From positions 1-64,000 of the forward strand of contig JAHLWZ010000644.1 of the NCBI GenBank assembly GCA_020536535.1: 64,000 nucleotides of DNA. The letters are read 5' to 3'. Of this stretch, positions 7,796-53,333 are shown one piece after another (the first letter of the stretch is position 1; each line of letters begins with the position of its first letter). A program made the translations under genes and the position numbers. This DNA is from Pelomyxa schiedti (lineage: Eukaryota; Protista; Evosea). The notes under the pieces were generated by a model that saw only the letters and a program-made list of their open reading frames with translations, had not been told where the DNA came from and did not search any database.

Positions 7796-10700
7796 TTAGT
7801 TGTTTTCCAGAGGTAGTGGCGTTTCTTCTTGATTTGGTGGTAAAACTGGGTGTTCTTGCTGCACAGGTTCTGCCACAGACATTGGAACTGGTTCGGCTTC
7901 AGGAGCGGGAATGGGTTCCGGTTGTTGTACTATGTCCATGGTTGTTGTTGAAACCCCTACAGAAAGCTCCGGTTGTGGTTGCGGTAGTTGCGGTGGTTGC
8001 TGGTCCCCGCCGGTTCCTACGGGCTCTGTGGTGCTAGTGGGTTGCGGCTGTACAGCTTGATGTGGTAGGGGTGTATCTGTTTGGGCTGCCTCGGATGCTA
8101 CGGCCTCCGCGGGTTGTGCAACTTGCTCTTGTGTGAGTGCAGTACTCTCCATGGTATCTTGGGGTTGCATGTTAACTTCTGGGATGGCTTCCGTGTTCTG
8201 CAGTTCGGGGTGGCCCTCCAAATGTGACTCCACAGGAGGGTGAACAACGTCTGGTACTGGAATAGATTCTTCTTGTGGGGGGAGCGCTTGGGGCAGCATT
8301 TCTGGTTGCGGTTGCGGTAAGACTTCTTGTGGTACTAGAGGCATCACAGATTCGGGTTGTTGAGGAGCTTCAGCTTCAGCTTCAGTACCTTCGACATGTT
8401 GAGATGGCAGTGTCGCAGCAACCATCTCTTGGGGAGGAAGTTTTTCTGAAGGTGGTTGCTCTTGCTTGAGTGGCTGTAGTTCTTCAGACGTTTGAATAGG
8501 AAGAGCTTCTGTGTGTTGTTGGACTTCCATTGAGGTATTACCTTCTAGCTTTGTACATGGTTGTTCAAGCTGTCGCACGGGAGTAGGTTGCGCCTCATCA
8601 CTAGTTACCTGGGTTGTTTGCACTGTTGTAACTGTGTCGGTTTCTTGTTGAGGTTGTGTTGTCTGGGGTAGGCCTTGAGGTAATGCTTTTTCATTGGAAT
8701 GTAAGAGGGTAAATGAAAGGAAATGGTAAGATACCTTGTGGTCGAGGTTGTGGCTTTCCCTGCCCCTGAATTCTGGTTACGAGTATGATGTAAAGCCTGT
8801 CTGCTTGGCCAGGAGCTGCCCTGCAATTTTCATTACTACAGGGGATGGAAATAGCTGGAATCATTTTTTGAGGAGCTAAAACCACCTCAAAGTGGGATCG
8901 GTTCTCATGAATTCTGGAAGATCGGCTTCTTTTCTTACTGGAAGAAGGTAGATTTCTTCTATACCAACTGGGGGTTGCTTTAGAGCGTTATCTACGTTTG
9001 CATGCCCAGCACTAAGTTGCATTAGAAGAGAATGCTGAGGAAGCTTGTACCGTTCTCGCCCAGTGAAATAATCAAACACCAAATTGTATTGACTGCGATC
9101 TTGCTCAGTGACTGGTTCGAGGCAAATCGTTGTTCGCTTTCTAGTAGCACTTGCACCTAACTGAACCAAGTAACTGGGAAATATTGGTCTAACAAAATAA
9201 ACAAGACTGCACACACTTGAGGAGTCTATCTATAGGAAGGCGTCCTGTGACATCGAGAGTTTGAGGCAATACAGAAGAATCAATGGGTCTTCCACATGCG
9301 TAGGTTCCACATACAACAAATGGGGGGTAAGGGGGTTTGTTCACGGTAAACTGCCAGCCAATTGGTGAAGCGTCAGCATCAGTGGGAAGCCGTGCCGAAG
9401 GGGAAACATCACTACCTTGCCCAGTAGTACGGGACTTCTTTGGTGGTGGCTCTTGAAGTACGTTATTGGAAATAAAACGGAAATTAGAAGTACCTGCGGG
9501 TCGAGTATGACTATGAGTTGGAGGAGAGGCAGAGTCAGAGTATCGCGGAAGAGACTGTACACTTCCATCTCCTATCAGCTTGGCAGCTTTCTCAGCTTGT
9601 TGCTTTTCAATTACCATATCAGGAGCTGTTCCCTCTTGAACAACCACCTTTGTGCGATTAATTCATGACAAATGGAGCACACGTACAGTTTCCATGGATT
9701 TTTTTTCACGAGATTTTCTCCAATTTATGAGATCGGGATTGGCGAGCTGCTGTGGTGTCATTTGTGCCAGGTGTTCAGGTGAGAGCTCACCACTAATAAT
9801 TCTATCTCGTAGCAAAGGGTTCTTTGCATCCTGAAAAAAAATTTGATTAGTATTCATACAGTTAGCTGCTGCAAACCTTAAGGTTAGATTGCAGGCTTCT
9901 AATCTTGCTGGCATACGTTTTACTGGAATTGGAAAATGAATCATGGACTGCTGCCTCAATTTGCTCCGCAATGTCTCTCTTACCTCCCAGTATTGTACTT
10001 AACTTCTCAATGGCAGAATTGCGGGTGGTGATAGGTATTTGCTTCTGAGGCTGTCCTTTGACTTATCATACAATTGTGAGAAGAAAAAAAAAGGAAACAG
10101 TAACACACTTGTCACTTTGGTAGAATCGGGACTCGCCACCACGGTTTTTGTACCAGGAGCGGGCATAGAGGCACGTCGGGCTCTTTGATCAGAATCACTA
10201 CCATCGCTCCCTACACAAGAGAAATTAGAATTTTCTGTGGTAAGTAAAAGGGGTGTAAATGTCGGAGGAGAACCTGAAACGTCATCCTGGGATGAAGTAG
10301 GAACACTTGCTCGTATTTTTGCTGGTATTTTGGCAGTGGCTTTTTTGGGGGAATCAGGTGCTGTTGCCTTTTAAGAAGTAAGGGCACCGCCTCAAGAAAA
10401 TAGAGTATTTTTTGTAAGAAACGAGAAAGAAAACGCAGCTACCGGCACTGGCTGTGAAGTGCCTTGCGGCTTTGACTCTAAAAAATACAATCAAAAAAAG
10501 GGAGAAAATAGTGAAGGAATTGTACCACAACGCTTGCAAACGTAAGTTTTTATTCCCTTGGAAGCACGTTGGGATATGCCAACACATTTTCCATGGTACC
10601 ACTCTTCACATATATCACACTGGATCATAAAACTTAATGTGGGTTATTATGGGTAGAAAACTTTCGAAACCGAACCTCCCGTCATCCTTTGATCTGCAGA

Positions 10701-12644: not shown

Positions 12645-14646
12645 TTTTTTTTGATTTCGAAGAATCAATCATTCGAAAAAAAGGAGAAACACAACACAGC
12701 AAAATTGTGAATTGGGAATAAAGACGCAGTGGGATGGGCTGAGTGCCTTTGCAATGCAGAACGAACTAGAGATGACGAATACGGCGGGCAGCTTTGTCCT
12801 GTTGGGACTTTACATTTGCAGTTGTGGCTGCAGTGTCTTGGAGTGATTCAATGCCATTTCTGACTTCCTGAACATGCTCTGGTGTAAGTATGGGCATCCT
12901 CTCGCCCTTTCTTTGCCTTCTTCTCCATGCAGTAAGGCACATTCCAGCAAACACGGAAATAACGGCACCAGTGGCTACCCACTGAATGGCAAGGCACACA
13001 ATGGTCATAATGTGGAGTAAATCATTGGAGCAAGGGTATAAAATCTGTAGGCTAACTTGAATGAGGAAATGGGATTATGTGAACCGAACTCACACTGTCC
13101 CAGCCATCATGCTGGAGAATTCTACTGCCCATGCCCAAGTTGCATATTAGATAATTTTTAGTGATCCATGGAATTTAAAGGATTAACCTACACGAGAGGG
13201 CCCCAATTCCAAGAATAATCACCAGCCATCCCTACACAATGGGAACAGCCACAGTTAGTTTGGTGTCAAGCCTATTATACATTTCATACCTCAAACAACA
13301 GAGTTCCTAGAACTACTAAGAAGCTGTATGAGGAAGCAACTACTTCAATCATGCCATAAATACACGTCTAGACAAGAGTTAAGCTGCCCGTTAATTTCGT
13401 CTTTAATTATTGTTCCTCCTTTTTTTGTTTTCAAATTATAAACCACCACAAACTTGGCACGTGAATCCGTCCTCCATTTCGACGCGAAACCACGAAGCAT
13501 TGATGGAGCTGCAAACAAGAAGCGGCACAAAGACAACAAAAGCAGCAGGAAGCACCAGCAACGGTTCTTGGCACAAAAAACAGTGGCAACCAGAGCACCG
13601 GCCACAACACCCTCGAGTTTCACCCCACCGCCTCCTCCCACAACATTTGCTCCTGTTCTGCATGGATACTGCTGCGTGCAATGAATGTTCAGAGTGCATC
13701 GGACCGTCAGGGTCCTGACCTTGTGAAGTCTAGAGTTTTTCGGTGTGACATTTCCGTTCGAGCAAAAAAAAAAGCAGAAGACCCTTTTTCTGCAAGATTC
13801 GGATTCTGTGATGAAGAAGAGGGGAGGGACACCGGCGGTGCCCAAGAGCACAACAAAAAGAATAACGCTGGCCAAACAGGGGTTGGAAGAAATTCCTGGT
13901 GTGGCAACTGTTTAGATGCCTCTTCTTCTTTTCTTTTTTTTTTCCCCCCCCTTCTCTTCCTTTCATTTCTCATGTTGTTGGAATGAAGTGGACCTCATCA
14001 GGGAACGATGTCCTGACGTTGTGGAGTTGGACTTAACTGACAACAACCTGGGCGAAATAATGGAGTGTCGGTTCTTTCCCACATTGCAACTCCTTGTATT
14101 GGACGGCAATCACATCTCCTCGGACACTCAATTCCCGTTTCTACCAAAACTTGATGTACTACCCCTATCTTGACTTTCTTTTCTTTTGTTTTCCGAGTTT
14201 TACCTCCTCCCCCTTATTTTTGCTTGTAATGGCTTTGAGTGATTAACCTTTTTTTTTTCTTTCGTTTCCTTTGCATGCAACACAACTACACCAAAGTCAC
14301 AGACACGCAGACACTCTGGGTAAACAAAAACGAAATTACCAACCTAGCTCTATTTCTTGACAAAATTACCTTGAGTACTCCCAATCTGAAGCATCTATCC
14401 ATGCTCAAAAATCCAGTACTTTCCAACCCCCGAATTCCCTCCCAATTTCGTTGTTTCGTTTTCCGTATCGTTCTCCTTTTTTTGTCCCCTCGCCCTTTTT
14501 CCCCCTAATTCTACACTAAGGCGTGCCCAAGTTGTTTCAATGGAGGCACGGTTGTTTTATATCAAGATTACAGATACTACACCCTCAGTCGACTGCCGCA
14601 CCTCCTCAGTCTCGACAACTCCCCAATCTCTGAGGAGGAGCGCCGG
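11982..14646 (+). repeat. Segmental duplication, copy B
   Basis: Aligns with 1-2558. Confidence 0.95.
12766..13663 (-). CDS. Small multi-pass membrane protein, copy B
   Basis: Paralogue of 785-1683 with conserved splice sites and an open frame. Confidence 0.65.
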
Positions 14647-14817
14647 ACGGCCCAGGGGATGTACGCATCTGTTAGCGCCGTCAGCACCACAAAGATGGTC
14701 CCAATTAAAATGCCGGCGCCATCTCCGCCTCCTGAGACATCCAAGGCCAAGAAAGGCACGCCGGCAAAAAAAGACGGCGGGGAGAGCAGCGACTGGACAG
14801 ACTCGGACGACGAGTGA
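13811..14817 (+). CDS. LRMDA-like LRR protein, copy B (complete)
   Basis: Same LRRs and LRRcap as copy A; ends ...SSDWTDSDDE*. Confidence 0.82.
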
Positions 14818-15003
14818 CAAGGCAAAAAAACAACACCAAGTTTGGCGTTTGGCAGTTGCTCAATTTGGAACTTTCTTCGAAGCAGCAGGCGCGACTCATG
14901 GATTTTCTTGAGATGCCAAAATCTGCGTTTTTTTTTCTTTTTGAAGTTTCTGGGGGGCGGTTGCTCACCCTGTTGGTTCCAACGCCGGAAAAGCGACACA
15001 GAA

Positions 15004-46179: not shown

Positions 46180-46645
46180 TTGAACTTTCTACGGAGGGTG
46201 AGCACTACCTGGAGCAGAACACGGAGGAAAAACCACTCACTAGAAGAGACAAGATCTTTAGGGTTCCCCTAATGTTGTTGCGATGTAACAACAAAAACTC
46301 CAAATGGTTTTTCCTTTTTGTGAGGAGCTGTCGTTGCCTTGTTCAGAGTACCCATGGTGGACGTATCCCCTTTGGGACGGGAAAAAGGACTAAGGAGTGG
46401 ATGGAAGAGTGAGTGGCATGGAAAGAAGGAGGACCCCAAGTTGGAAATTTTTGACTTCTGCGATCTATAAGATGGCAGCTTCTGCTTCTTGTTAGGGCAG
46501 GCCAATTTTTCTCGTTCATTTTCGCAGTTATTTATAACTCTTGCACAAGAACAAAAAAAAACACAACAAATCAAAAAAGCAACAGACAGAAACAACCCAC
46601 CCAATACAAAAAAACAAAACAAAAAAAACACACCGGACAGATCCC

Positions 46646-47623
<978 letters not shown>

Positions 47624-47770
47624 AAAACACACTTTTTTCTCTCGCGTTTTTTGGTGTAATGTAAAATCACAAGCCCTAGGGTGAGGCCTACTTTGTTAAA
47701 AGGGGAAAAAAAAAAATTAAAAACCCATCAAAATCCGTCTTTTTTCCTGTTCTTCATCAAACGTGACAAA

Positions 47771-49287
47771 ATGCCCAAGGCAAAGAGGGGAACCACGAGG
47801 AGGGAGCCTCCCACCAAGGCTGCAAATGCAAACAGACACGGATCCCATAAGGACGGTTGTGGGTCGTGCTGTTGCTGTTGTTGCGGGGCGAAGGGCTGTG
47901 CGTTGGTGTGCTTGGTGCTGGGGGTTGCGGCGGCTGCAGGGGCGGCGTGGCTCGTGAGGATGTCGGCTCCTTTGGAGCTGGACCTGGCCCCGTGCGGGGA
48001 CTGGGCGGCAAAATCGGGGGCGAGGCTACAGCTGGATGATGGGAGGAATCTATCTTACAGGGTTTATGGTGTGCCCTGCCCGGCGGGAGCCAATTGTGGG
48101 AGGGAAGCTGCTTGGTGCAGTCACATGTCTTCTTATTTTTTACTTTTAGTTCGAAGTCATGATTTGATGCTTAATTTAGTGTAATTTTTAGCCTGTATAT
48201 TGGTATTAAAATCTGAGTTAAATTAATATGATTTCCACCATAATAGGTTCTGGAGAACACGTTGTTTTCTACCTCCACCCTGACCCACAGTCTAGTGGGT
48301 GGGTTCATCCAAATATAGAAGATTTCTGCCGTGAAACTAACACTCGCATCCTGGCACTTGATCGACCTGGAGTAGGCCTCTCATCCCCACAACCCCGGCG
48401 CAATTTCCCCGACTATGCAGATGGTGTGTAACAATTTTCAGTAACTGCAACCTCACAGTAATTAATAAAGATGTCATTCAGTTGGTGACACACCTCGGCA
48501 TTACAAACTTCTCTGTAATTGGGCACAGTGCTGGAACTCCACACGCTCTTGCACTTGGAGCTGACCCGCGAGTAAAATCGCTTGGTATGTTTCTTTACAG
48601 AGATACCGTGGACTAAGTTCTTTAAGGTCTGCAACAAATTGCCTTGATTGGTCCCATATATCCCCCAAAGGAATTTAACAGCGGAACTTTGGAGGGAATG
48701 TCTAAAACGAACATCCTTGTCACTAAGCTAGCGAGGCGTTTCCCTTATGCTATCAAGCTTTATCTGTGTGTAACACGTTTCATGGGTTCCCTCTCGTAAC
48801 GGAGTTTAGTTCCTTGGTTCCTATAATGGCGAGACTGCTAGGAACAGAAACTACAATCAAGCTCCTTCTTTCTGAAAGCCCCAGAGACGTTTCTCTTGCA
48901 TTATCCTCGTACGTCAACCACCAAAACAACAAACAAAAACAACAAACAACCCACTAATTACACCTAAACAACAAAACAACCAGGCCTGAATGGATGCAAA
49001 GATTCGAGTGTTCGCTGGTAGAACACTTCGCGCAAGGATTCGCGCCGGCCGCACACGAATTCTACAGAATCGCCGAAGTGGACTGGCACTTTTCTCCCGC
49101 CAACGTGCAAGTACCCCTGGATTGCTGGGTGGGCTCAGACGACACCCTGACACCCAGTTTCATGGCCCATACCATATGCGAAATGGTCCCAATGTGCCGA
49201 GGAGTGCATGTCATTGACGGCGAGGGCCACTATAGCATCTACGCCAATCACTTGGAAGCAATTCTAAAGGGCCTGTTTGGGCATTGA
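47771..49287 (+). CDS. Membrane-anchored alpha/beta hydrolase
   Basis: N-terminal TM; LDDGRNLSYRVYG, LALDRPGVGLS, GHSAG nucleophile, WVGSDDTL, DGEGHYS. Confidence 0.9.
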
Positions 49288-49472: not shown

Positions 49473-52400
49473 ATGGCGAGATGTGCGGAGGTGGGTTGCA
49501 TTGCTGCGGTGCAGAGATTCTGCACAAACGACGGTCCTGGATTACGCACTACCGTGTTTCTGAAAGTATGGGGTTTTTTTACTGTTTCTTTCGCACCGTT
49601 TTTTGCTCTTGACTCGCGTGATCTCATCGAAAAATATATAGGGGTGTAATATGCGATGCGGGTGGTGTTGTAACCCAGAGTGCCTGAGTTCAGTTGTTCA
49701 ACAACGAATGGGAGAAACTACTGTTGGGTTTTATCAAACCGCTCAACAACTAGCGAGCCAACTTGTGCGTGATAAAGCATTCTGGAGCTATTCCTATGTT
49801 CCTTCTTCTGCGCCGCAACCAGTTTCAACAGCAGCAACGGCAATGCAACCAGTGGACCAGATTAATGGAATGCTTGGTAATCCCAGTTCCGAGGAAGTTG
49901 CTCGAGTACCCTCACGTGGAGGGGTAACCATTACTGGAGGAGAACCACTACTGCAATCTCAGTTTGTTTTGCACCTGGTCCGTGAGTTGAAAGCTCAAGG
50001 AATTCATGTTGCAATGGAGTCAAACGCTTCTCTAATTGCTCGTTCCGTCACCGCGAGGGAAGTCGTTAAAAGTCTGGACTACTGCATTGTTGATCTGAAA
50101 TGTGCTCATGAGTGCAAACATGAAGAAGTCACAGGAGTTGCTTTGGCTGATGTTAGGGAAGGAGTGGCAGTGGCAGCAAGTGAATGCCGTGATGTGCTTG
50201 TAAGAACTCCAGTAATCCCAGGAGTTAATAACACTTCTGAAGATATCGAATCACTAGCCAACTTGGTTGCATCACTTCCTTCTCGAGGTACCTTTTTTCT
50301 TGATACTATTTTTGTAAAACTTGTTGTCACTGATTCCTTGAAGTATCTTGGGAGTTGCTCCCTTATCACAACCGTGCAAAGGGGAAATACAGTTCCCTTG
50401 GTATACCCTACCTGCTGGGAAATCTTTCCCCTCTTTCACAGAAGGATTTAGCTCCACTTTCTGCTATTGCACAATACATCGCACCACCTCCAGATTTCGC
50501 ACCATCATTACCCAGCCCTCCTCAACAAATTTGCATCACTGGAGAACAAACCCACCGTAGTGCACGGACTGATACAATGTTGCGCGAACTATTAAATCTC
50601 CGTCCGAGTGTATCACATCATCGAGCCCAAGTTCTCACTGAATTTTTCCAAGATCTGGAGCATCAATCAATTCCAACACCAATATCCTATCCTCCCATTT
50701 CTCCAACCAATCCGACTACTATTAATGCCTCCAAGTCACCGGCCTTGGCTGTTGCTTTGGCATTCAAAAAGCTGTGTGAAGAAATTCCCGTGGGAATTCA
50801 TAGTAATGACCTCCTTGTGGGAGAGCGTGGAAAAGGCGGAGCTCCAAAAGTAGTTCCTACATACCCCGAGCTTCATGCGCACACAGCAGCAGAACTAAGG
50901 GAGCTAATATCAAGGAGTGTGCAGAAATTCGATGTTTCTGAGGACTGCGCTGCCCTTTTTGATCAACAAATCCACCCAAGCTGGCACGGAAAAACTGTTA
51001 CTGAAAACCTTATTTTTGCCAACCAATCTGAGTATAAAAACTATCTTACCTGTGGGGGTTTCACACAAGTATGTTTTGCAGCCAGTTAACACTTATCCAC
51101 TAAGACTCTGTCGTGTAGTTCATCGACTTCTTCCAGCCTTATACTGTCAACATGGATGATAGATTATACAGATTTGGTCTTGGGGGTGTTATTTCTGAGA
51201 TTCAGAAGCAGATTTTGCACCTACAATCCAACAAAACCTCTGCCGAAAGACCTGATTGCACAGAAGAATTCTATTCATTGTCCGCCATGTTAATCTCCTG
51301 CACTGCATTGATTAGCCTTGCCCATCGCTACGCTTCCTGTGCATTGCAGTTAGCTTCACAATGTGAGCAACCAGAAAGAAGAAATGAGCTCCAACAAATT
51401 GCACATGTATGCAATAGGGTTCCAGAGAATCCCCCAAGCACCTTGTGGGAAGCTATCCAATTTTATTGGTTTTTGCATATGGGGACTACACTAGAGAGCA
51501 ACAGTGATGCCCTTGGTCCTGGTTTTATTGACAGATACCTGGCACCCTTTTATTTTAGTGATGTATACGAAAAAAAGACCATCACCCATCAGTTCGCCCG
51601 TGAGCTATTAGAGGGTCTGGTATTAAAGTTGTATGCCCACTACACTACCCCAACAACGCTGGGAGAGAATGCTACATATGTCTATTTCTCTAATTTGCAA
51701 TTGGGCGGTGACAACCCAAATGAACTAAGTGCTATTTTTCTTGACATTTTAGACGACCTTCATCTATTTCAGCCACTGAGCCAGGCACTTACTCTGTAAC
51801 CTAAAATTTGGTTGTTAATACGCAAATAGGTTTTCATCTCTCAAAAAACACCAGATTGGTTTCTTCACCGAGCATGCCGTGCGATTCGACACGGAACTGG
51901 TTACCCGGCAGGTAGGAAACTTTCCATGGAGTTGTTTTTTTTTTCATCCCCCTATAGTATTCAACTTGGACAGTATCCGATCCCAGCTTCGCAATCACGG
52001 TTGCAGCTCAGAGGATGCTATGTCCAATGGGGGTGTTGTTGGCTGTGTTGAAACAATATGTGTTGGAAAGGAGTGCTTATTTACCGTCGGATACTTGAAT
52101 GCCACCAAGCCACTGGAACTTGCCCTAAACAACGGTTAGTACAATATTCCCGAAAACGTTTTCACTCTTTCAGGAGTTGACCCCTTGACCGGGCAATCTG
52201 TTGGCCCAGCAACGGGAGATCCTACAAAATTTACCTCACTCCAAGATGTCCTTGACGCCTATGTAGCACAGTTCAGGAACATGGTGAGAGTCAAGGTTGC
52301 GGGAGATTTTGATATCGAAACTCAAGCTGCCCGGAGATGGCCAACACCTTTCCGATCTGTTATAATAGACGGATGTGTTGAAAATCACGCACTGCTAGAA

Positions 52401-53333
52401 TTTGGCGGCGCCAAGTACAACTCCTCAGCCATTGCAGTATTCCACTCCCTCAATTTTTTTCCATTTTAACTAGCGTCCAAGGTTTCGTGCTTCGGAAGTA
52501 CTGTTGATAGCCTTGTGGCACTGGATCAAGTTGTATTTTCCAAGAAATTACTCCCCATGTCAGCAGTGTTGGAAGCACTCCGCAGCGACTTTGCTGGATG
52601 TGACAATTCCGTACACACACTCCTCAGTTCCCAGCCTAAATGGGGAAATGACTGTGACACAGCCGACAACATAGCCATTCAACTAGAGAGACTTCTTCGA
52701 GGAGAGATTGATGGTCGCAAAAACTTCAGGGGAGGTGTTTACAGAGCTGAATTTTTGAGTGTCACGGCTCACATTTCTTTTGGCAGTTCTACTGGGGCAA
52801 CACCAAATGGTGTGTGGTGTTGTCACACGAATTGTATTTTCACACTGCTTAGGCCGAAAAGCTCGTACACCACTTTCTGAAGGTCTTTCGGCCTCACAAG
52901 GCCAAGACAAGAACAGTCCCACTGCATTACTTCTCTCTGCTTCAAAGCTCGACCATACAGTTTCCAAGGGTAACTTACTGAATGTAAAGTTCTTGCCGGA
53001 CCTCCTAGCTGGCGCTGTACGAAATTCTGGTGTTTTTCGGTAATTTAACGATTTATCAGAGGGGAGAACTTGCATTGGCAGCACTATTGCGAGGTTATTT
53101 TTCGCTTGGAGGCCACGAACTTCAGTGCAACGTTGTCTCTGGTCACACTTTGCGGTGAGATTACTCTTTTAGTGTACTTCATAACAGTTCTTTCTAACAG
53201 GGATGCACAACTCAACCCTGACAAGTACCGAGACTTGATTGTGCGGGTGGCTGGATACAGTGACTTGTTTGTAGAACTGACCAAAGACATTCAAGACGAC
53301 ATCATAGCACGAACGGAACACGGCTCGGAGTAA
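49473..53333 (+). CDS. Fused glycyl-radical activating enzyme (radical SAM) + glycyl radical enzyme (HypD/PFL2-like), about 1,100 aa
   Basis: Activase: [18 protein letters not shown]|[41 protein letters not shown]...KY. Exon 50344-51068 continues without a stop into the GRE (LLVGERG...TYPE); then [15 protein letters not shown]|[20 protein letters not shown] and [15 protein letters not shown]...RTEH*. Confidence 0.92.

Follow-up and report, generated by a model that had tools for sequence, protein, structure and literature searches.

A split nuclear gene encoding a fused activase and glycyl radical enzyme

The window analysed here is a 64,000-nucleotide stretch of DNA from the anaerobic amoeba Pelomyxa schiedti (contig JAHLWZ010000644.1, positions 1 to 64,000). 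Between positions 49473 and 53333 of its forward strand lies a nuclear gene of 11 exons and 10 short introns, the product of which is one polypeptide in which a radical-SAM activase precedes an oxygen-sensitive glycyl radical enzyme (GRE). The locus appears as a string of short open reading frames in changing frames rather than as a single bacterial reading frame, and each piece matches either radical-SAM activase or PFL-like and glycine-radical domains. A first-pass annotation made by eye had proposed here a GRE resembling trans-4-hydroxy-L-proline dehydratase (HypD) with a rewritten substrate pocket. All the motifs it quoted are present on the plus strand of the window, but the C-terminal one, which it placed within 51050-52800, actually lies at 53226-53270. 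Its account was also incomplete, as it missed the ten introns, the fusion to an activase, the replacement of Thr645 by Val and the deletions of Lys326 and Trp277 (HypD numbering).

Our searches covered the best matches among 1.84 billion protein representatives, and 185,579 species genomes and 241 million metagenome records were scanned in addition. The longest exon retrieved a 100%-identical protein of 1025 residues, P0001, which a word search and a cluster look-up identified as KAH3759939.1, deposited at NCBI as a "glycyl radical protein" of Pelomyxa schiedti. P0001 maps onto the window as 10 exact blocks, with GT-AG borders at 8 of the 9 junctions and GC-AG at the remaining one. The NCBI model begins at an internal Met codon at 49843. 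Upstream of it lies an exon (49473-49565) that starts with the ATG at 49473 and is followed by a 76-nt GT-AG intron and then by the radical-SAM cluster motif. Consequently, the real gene would span 49473-53333 in 11 exons and, judged from the DNA, the deposited protein is truncated at its N-terminus, the exons with the cluster motif having been omitted. Full-length searches were made with P0001, while the joined 11-exon model served for the reading-frame check.

The locus is present in public runs of one study, among which run X3 holds a cDNA contig. This contig lacks the last four introns, in exact agreement with the gene model, its GT..AG joints skipping 45, 43, 43 and 46 bases. The gene is therefore transcribed and spliced. 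The 5' loose end of the contig is presumably a SMART template-switch adaptor. Because a single exon runs from the end of the activase across a Pro-rich linker into the GRE, no splice is needed to produce the fusion.

Two other explanations of the locus were examined and ruled out. A pseudogene fragmented by frameshifts does not fit breaks that are all introns of 39-76 nt (9 GT-AG and 1 GC-AG, 4 of them confirmed by cDNA), and a bacterial gene or contaminant is incompatible with the introns, the cDNA and the eukaryotic neighbour genes.

Relationship to HypD and other glycyl radical enzymes

Membership in the GRE superfamily is indicated by PF02901 and PF01228, which match every GRE exon as well as P0001. 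Both hallmark loops are found: the Gly loop as RVAGYSD at 53244-53264 and the Cys loop as GCVE at 52041-52052. The C-V-E of the latter aligns with Cys434-Val435-Glu436 of HypD and follows the C-X-E pattern that defines the GRE 1,2-eliminases (PMC13450708).

The first-pass annotation had noted a resemblance to HypD, and HypD is indeed the nearest family. The GRE part (P0001:226-1025) aligns over its whole length with the C. difficile HypD chain 6vxc_A (HMMER, 546 bits, E=1e-162), the next-best solved GRE being glycerol dehydratase with 413 bits. Among NCBIfam models, HypD (NF043068) also scores best. Its 663 bits nevertheless fall short of the equivalog cut-off of 1100, which the canonical HypDs P0007, P0156 and P0151 clearly exceed (1321-1427 bits); P0007 reaches 1255 bits against 6vxc. 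The AlphaFold modelling that had been suggested as a check gave a confident structure of the GRE part (AlphaFold2, pLDDT 92.6, pTM 0.93), the top Foldseek match of which is 6vxc (TM 0.94, rmsd 1.7 A), solved GREs spanning TM 0.84-0.94. Identity to HypD in the structural alignment (PDB 6VXC/6VXE) is 37%. Beyond this full-length homology, the amoeba enzyme shares with HypD the Gly loop, the C-V-E Cys loop, Asp278, Phe152, Phe340 and Tyr450. Unlike HypD, it is encoded by a eukaryotic, intron-bearing gene and fused to its activase.

Confidence in the model is low in a Pro/Thr/Ser-rich insertion of ~22 residues in the N-terminal region of the GRE (window ~50664-50740), which is missing from the orthologue described below and from all HypDs. 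It is probably real coding sequence since no splice signals occur there.

The catalytic His of glycerol dehydratase is His164 (PMC13450708). The B12-independent glycerol and 1,2-propanediol dehydratases (1R8W, 5I2A, 9RCO) have the GRE 1,2-eliminase fold and the C-X-E motif in common with the amoeba GRE, but their similarity to it is much weaker (368-413 bits). We take His164 to be the equivalent of HypD His160, where the amoeba enzyme has Thr. Some non-HypD GRE representatives carry hydrophobic residues before the Cys-loop Gly, which may be a trait of diol dehydratases. The choline trimethylamine-lyase CutC (PDB 5FAU) is likewise a C-X-E eliminase, but a distant one (~324 bits) whose Asp and aromatic residues stand at other positions, and there is no evidence for choline as substrate of the amoeba enzyme. 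The aromatic-plus-Asp character of the pocket does recall CutC, which presumably holds a cationic amine without a carboxylate.

Remodelling of the substrate pocket

Residues are numbered after HypD through a gapless HMMER alignment to 6vxc_A, in which chain numbers run 20 ahead of the native ones. The offset was checked by hand at 13 positions named in PMC7077986 (F152, R156, H160, W277, D278, K326, S334, D339, F340, C434, Y450, T645 and G765), and the residue type agreed at each. In HypD, Cys434 and Glu436 are catalytic and Gly765 is the radical site, Phe152 and Trp277 contact the substrate, and Phe340 makes a proline-aromatic contact. The substrate carboxylate is clamped by Ser334, Tyr450 and Thr645 and its charge balanced by Arg156 and Lys326, while the acid-base residues His160, Asp278, Asp339 and Glu436 are all essential by mutagenesis (PMC7077986).

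This alignment agrees with most of what had been read by eye. The HypD motif EQRAPGH reads DFFQPYT (R156F, H160T), ESSTYTDF reads ENATYVYF (S334N, D339Y, with F340 kept), the Ser before GCVE reads Val (S433V), and Asp278 and the catalytic Cys434 and Glu436 are retained. The Tyr of GKEAY indeed reads Leu; it is, however, Tyr445 rather than Y450 as first numbered, and Tyr450, in the TGYMN motif, is kept as VGYLN. A three-residue deletion directly upstream of GENATYVYF removes Lys326.

Taken by function, the HypD acid-base set is incomplete in the amoeba GRE: Asp278 and Glu436 are kept, and Thr and Tyr stand for His160 and Asp339. Tyr450 is the only survivor of the carboxylate clamp and its counter-charges, which otherwise read Asn334, Val645 and Phe156, with Lys326 deleted. 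Thus His160, Asp339, Ser334, Thr645, Arg156 and Lys326 are all replaced or deleted (6/6), mostly by hydrophobic or aromatic residues. Conversely, Phe340 and Phe152 of the proline-aromatic contact are both still Phe, and the ammonium-holding Asp and aromatic residues are kept (Asp278, Phe152, Phe340, Tyr450) or augmented (new Phe156 and Tyr339). The proper alignment that could have overturned the first-pass reading therefore shows most HypD pocket residues to be changed, not conserved.

These replacements bear directly on activity. C. difficile HypD variants at His160, Asp339 and Ser334 (S334A being the one named) had no detectable activity and the efficiency of T645A was down 2-3 orders of magnitude (PMC7077986), so that loss of HypD activity is expected in an enzyme in which all four residues are replaced. 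To compare the pocket with the rest of the protein, we used the 257 columns with an invariance of at least 97% among 115 HypDs. The amoeba protein keeps 72% of these, yet 6 of the 10 substrate-contact positions are changed and 4 kept (one-sided Fisher p=0.03). Measured on these columns, change in the pocket exceeds general divergence.

Table 1. Features of the activase-GRE gene in the window (residues in HypD numbering).
Feature	Positions	Strand	Basis or remark
Whole gene, activase-GRE fusion	49473-53333	+	P0001 exact mapping; first exon and start of second inferred from sequence
Exons 1-3	49473-49565, 49642-50287, 50344-51068	+	
Exons 4-6	51119-51784, 51830-51911, 51958-52134	+	
Exons 7-9	52174-52436, 52482-52809, 52853-53016	+	
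Exons 10-11	53060-53154, 53201-53333 (stop included)	+	
Intron with GC donor (GC..AG), inferred	51785-51829	+	No GT-AG solution gives P0001; outside cDNA coverage
Introns removed in cDNA	52437-52481, 52810-52852, 53017-53059, 53155-53200	+	Run X3 contig
Activase (radical-SAM) domain	49642-50450	+	PF04055, TIGR02494
Radical-SAM cluster motif CX3CX2C	49642-49680	+	Read from sequence; orthologue on L001 has the same motif, GCNMKCTWCCNPE
Single exon with activase C-terminus (LLPYH...), Pro-rich linker and GRE N-terminus	50344-51068	+	Same continuous frame in L001
FIDFFQPYT (HypD F152-H160): Phe152 kept, Arg156 to Phe, His160 to Thr	51119-51145	+	Same in orthologue
NSDALGPG-type loop: Asp278 kept, Trp277 deleted	51494-51523	+	HMMER alignment
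GENATYVYF: Ser334 to Asn, Asp339 to Tyr, Phe340 kept	51662-51688	+	
Cys loop: Thr432 and Ser433 to Val and Val; Cys434, Glu436 and Tyr450 kept; Tyr445 to Leu	52029-52100	+	
FLSVTAH: Thr645 to Val	52752-52772	+	
Glycyl radical loop, Gly765 equivalent at 53253-53255	53226-53270	+	PF01228, HMMER alignment

Distribution and phylogeny

In these searches, the canonical HypD pocket was found in each of the closest prokaryotic relatives (38-45% identity). Two protein searches yielded 115 nearest full-length relatives, with 40-44% pairwise identity to the amoeba protein, and all 115 carry the canonical signature Phe-Arg-His-Asp-Ser-Asp-Phe...Tyr-Tyr-Thr-Thr-Gly. When exon 4 was searched with HMMER against the protein representatives, nothing above 50% identity was found besides P0002/P0270, the sole other holder of the new pocket, and scans of metagenome and genome contigs for the FIDFFQPY pattern gave no locus above 43% identity. 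The best 80 metagenome and best 80 species-genome loci were confirmed by tblastn (38-43% identity). Each of these 160 loci has at least 2 of the 3 canonical motifs FMEQRxPGH, NxWD and ExxTYxDF, all three being present in 144 under the strict pattern, and FIDFFQPY occurs in none of them.

A phylogeny, another check that had been proposed, was reconstructed by maximum likelihood (LG+C20, 67 rows). The two eukaryotic sequences group together (SH-aLRT 100) as sister to the HypD clade, represented by 22 sampled members (21 canonical sequences and P0005). The joint clade has an SH-aLRT of 100 and HypD monophyly one of 94. The amoeba stem is long (1.07 changes per site), hence the eukaryotic pair may nest inside HypD. 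A bacterial HypD-like protein, P0048, branches outside the joint clade with a support of 99 and keeps Arg156, His160, Ser334, Asp339 and Thr645. By parsimony, the amoeba states would therefore be derived from a HypD-type pocket.

Other bacterial proteins close to HypD also depart from its signature. P0048 and P0025 have no Asp at the Asp278 position, reading ESNSY-A (Tyr or gap), and at 788 bits they miss the HypD cut-off. In P0004, Cys takes the place of His160, a position that the P0005 fragment does not span, and Ser433 is Asn in both. From their sequences, the P0048/P0025 and P0004/P0005 groups look like uncharacterised specificities near HypD.

A divergent orthologue and selection on the gene

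The second eukaryotic sequence, P0002/P0270, is 57% identical to the P. schiedti protein and lies on L001, a 43-kb ENA contig (ERZ21831265:ctg76908l) whose other genes (HSP70, SH3, Sel1) are eukaryotic and split by introns. No paper was found that names ERZ21831265 or ERR12015701. With 39% G+C against about 45% for the window, L001 belongs to an organism distinct from P. schiedti. The orthologue shares the activase-GRE fusion, the CX3CX2C motif and the Gly loop, as well as the intron sites that follow FLK and GxFTQ. The HSP70 gene of this contig, itself intron-split, occupies positions 12659-14880 of the minus strand, and the contig also carries Sel1-repeat genes.

All 12 of the named pocket positions are the same in both orthologues. 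More broadly, 29 HypD-invariant positions are changed identically in the pair, 20 of which fall in four active-site segments, namely the Phe152-His160 loop, the Lys326-Asp339 segment, the Cys loop and Thr645. Synonymous sites between the two genes are saturated (pS 0.78) while pN is 0.29. Consequently, the protein and its new pocket have been under strong purifying selection over a long period.

Such conservation bears on whether the gene is just what remains of a transferred HypD gene, decaying or no longer catalytic, with pocket changes due to drift. The long stem branch, the loss of the auxiliary cluster domain of the activase (see below) and the loss of essential HypD residues would all be expected of such a remnant. 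Against it, the frame is intact across 11 exons and the gene is transcribed and correctly spliced, pN is low next to saturated synonymous sites, and both species retain the Gly and Cys loops together with the CX3CX2C and GGE motifs. Since the changed pocket residues are, moreover, identical in both orthologues and the structural model is confident, we consider decay highly improbable.

The activase domain

PF04055 and NCBIfam TIGR02494 match the activase only at profile positions 123-241. Since the profile is aligned only in part, these matches do not reach the full-length cut-off. The domain nonetheless has both expected elements, the CX3CX2C motif and a radical-SAM core with its GGE motif (GGEPLLQ). 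Activases of most non-PFL GREs contain a ferredoxin-like insert with eight Cys for auxiliary clusters (PMC13450708). No Cys occurs between CX3CX2C (NPEC) and GGEPLLQ, either in the window (~49642-49960) or on L001 (~9300-9600), and the auxiliary ferredoxin-like cluster domain is therefore absent. In both orthologues, a Cys-free stretch of similar length stands where the eight-Cys domain would be. Because of this absence, installation of the radical by the fused activase is assumed.

Proposed reaction and alternative readings

We think it probable that the locus is a functional P. schiedti nuclear gene of bacterial origin that encodes an activase and a glycyl radical 1,2-eliminase derived from a HypD-type ancestor, with a substrate other than trans-4-hydroxy-L-proline. 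That substrate appears unsuitable because the carboxylate clamp, the counter-charges and two acid-base residues are replaced or deleted. The first-pass annotation had likewise suggested an active enzyme, an eliminase or dehydratase, that probably acts on something other than hydroxyproline, a view supported by the intact radical motifs, splicing, selection and HypD mutagenesis and, as regards the substrate, by the score below the HypD cut-off. As read from the pocket, the substrate would probably lack a carboxylate. Our best guess is a small hydroxylated amine or a diol with no free carboxylate; by inference only, it would keep a hydroxyl and probably an amine.

The reaction scheme takes the presence of the motifs as observed and infers the remaining steps. 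The activase domain would cleave S-adenosylmethionine at the CX3CX2C cluster and place a radical on the Gly of RVAGYSD, from which it would move to the Cys of GCVE. The resulting thiyl radical would take a hydrogen from a substrate carbon adjoining a heteroatom. Glu436 and Asp278 would then handle the hydroxyl and amine protons, and the leaving group, water or amine, would be eliminated.

An enzyme that is still a hydroxyproline dehydratase, or one acting on another hydroxyproline isomer or an N-methylated hydroxyproline, would need Asn334, Tyr339 and Tyr450 to take over the binding of the carboxylate from Ser334, Thr645, Arg156 and Lys326. The position as sister of canonical HypD and the retention of Asp278, Phe340, Phe152, Tyr450 and C-V-E are compatible with such a substrate, the product of which could be taken by the P5C reductase of P. 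schiedti (PMC8887013), and hydroxyproline isomers are also substrates of other GREs, whose pockets differ (PMC13450708). We nevertheless find it unlikely: the HypD variants tested at His160, Asp339 and Ser334 showed no detectable activity, both charge-balancing residues are lost, and the amoeba protein reaches just 663 of the 1100 bits required of a HypD. The GREs HpyG, HpzG and HplG are, in addition, far more distant from it than HypD is (306-325 bits versus 546).

A 1,2-eliminase is also to be weighed against a different reaction class, such as a redox-neutral ring-opening isomerisation (HplG, YbiW, PflD-like) with no net elimination. GRE isomerases likewise keep the C-X-E motif (PMC13450708), and the radical intermediate could meet a different fate once His160 and Asp339, the proposed proton-relay residues, are lost. 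Isomerisation and elimination are inseparable by sequence alone. However, the amoeba GRE has no specific similarity to these enzymes (7vua 325, 8id7 284 and 8yjo 310 bits versus 546 for HypD), and we regard an isomerase as improbable.

Several observations weigh against a functional eliminase with a new substrate. Changes are only modestly enriched in the pocket, and part of the change could reflect generally fast evolution along the long stem. Asn334, Tyr339 and Tyr450 could still hydrogen-bond a carboxylate, and the activase has no auxiliary ferredoxin-like domain of the kind typical of most non-PFL activases. RNA evidence covers only the 3' 1.1 kb of the transcript, and genomic context is uninformative in a eukaryote.

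Genomic neighbourhood

Upstream on the same strand, an intron-bearing alpha/beta-hydrolase gene with a poly-Cys, hydrophobic N-terminus occupies ~47770-49287 and is preceded by a gene for a Rab-like small GTPase (46600-47400). Neither of these neighbours has an evident functional link to the GRE.

Significance

The protein itself is already known from GenBank, under a generic name. What is new is its reading as a HypD-derived GRE with a remodelled and conserved pocket, so far seen only in two eukaryotes. A 2026 review of GREs counts six C-O, one C-N and three C-S eliminases together with three isomerases (PMC13450708); its text uses "eukaryot" once, regarding ribonucleotide reductases, and neither "fusion" nor "fused". 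Our literature search found no paper that links Pelomyxa with glycyl radical enzymes, and the Pelomyxa genome paper mentions PFL only in passing. The new chemistry that the first-pass annotation put forward as a candidate is at present a candidate only.

More specifically, and tentatively, the gene may represent a GRE lineage, so far of two eukaryotes, in which a transferred HypD became an eliminase whose substrate is an amino alcohol or diol lacking a carboxylate (ethanolamine-, aminopropanol- or choline-like), with a self-contained activase devoid of auxiliary clusters. If true, both the reaction of such an eliminase and the activation arrangement of its fused activase would be ones not yet described for GREs. 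As a single polypeptide without auxiliary clusters, the activase-GRE could suit studies of activation. The system has the look of a natural experiment, as the specificity of the parent, HypD, is known in atomic and mutational detail and two divergent eukaryotes have the derived pocket in fixed form. Were the substrate identified, the GRE repertoire would gain a reaction and the metabolism of anaerobic eukaryotes a further piece, and it would become clear how few changes re-aim a radical enzyme.

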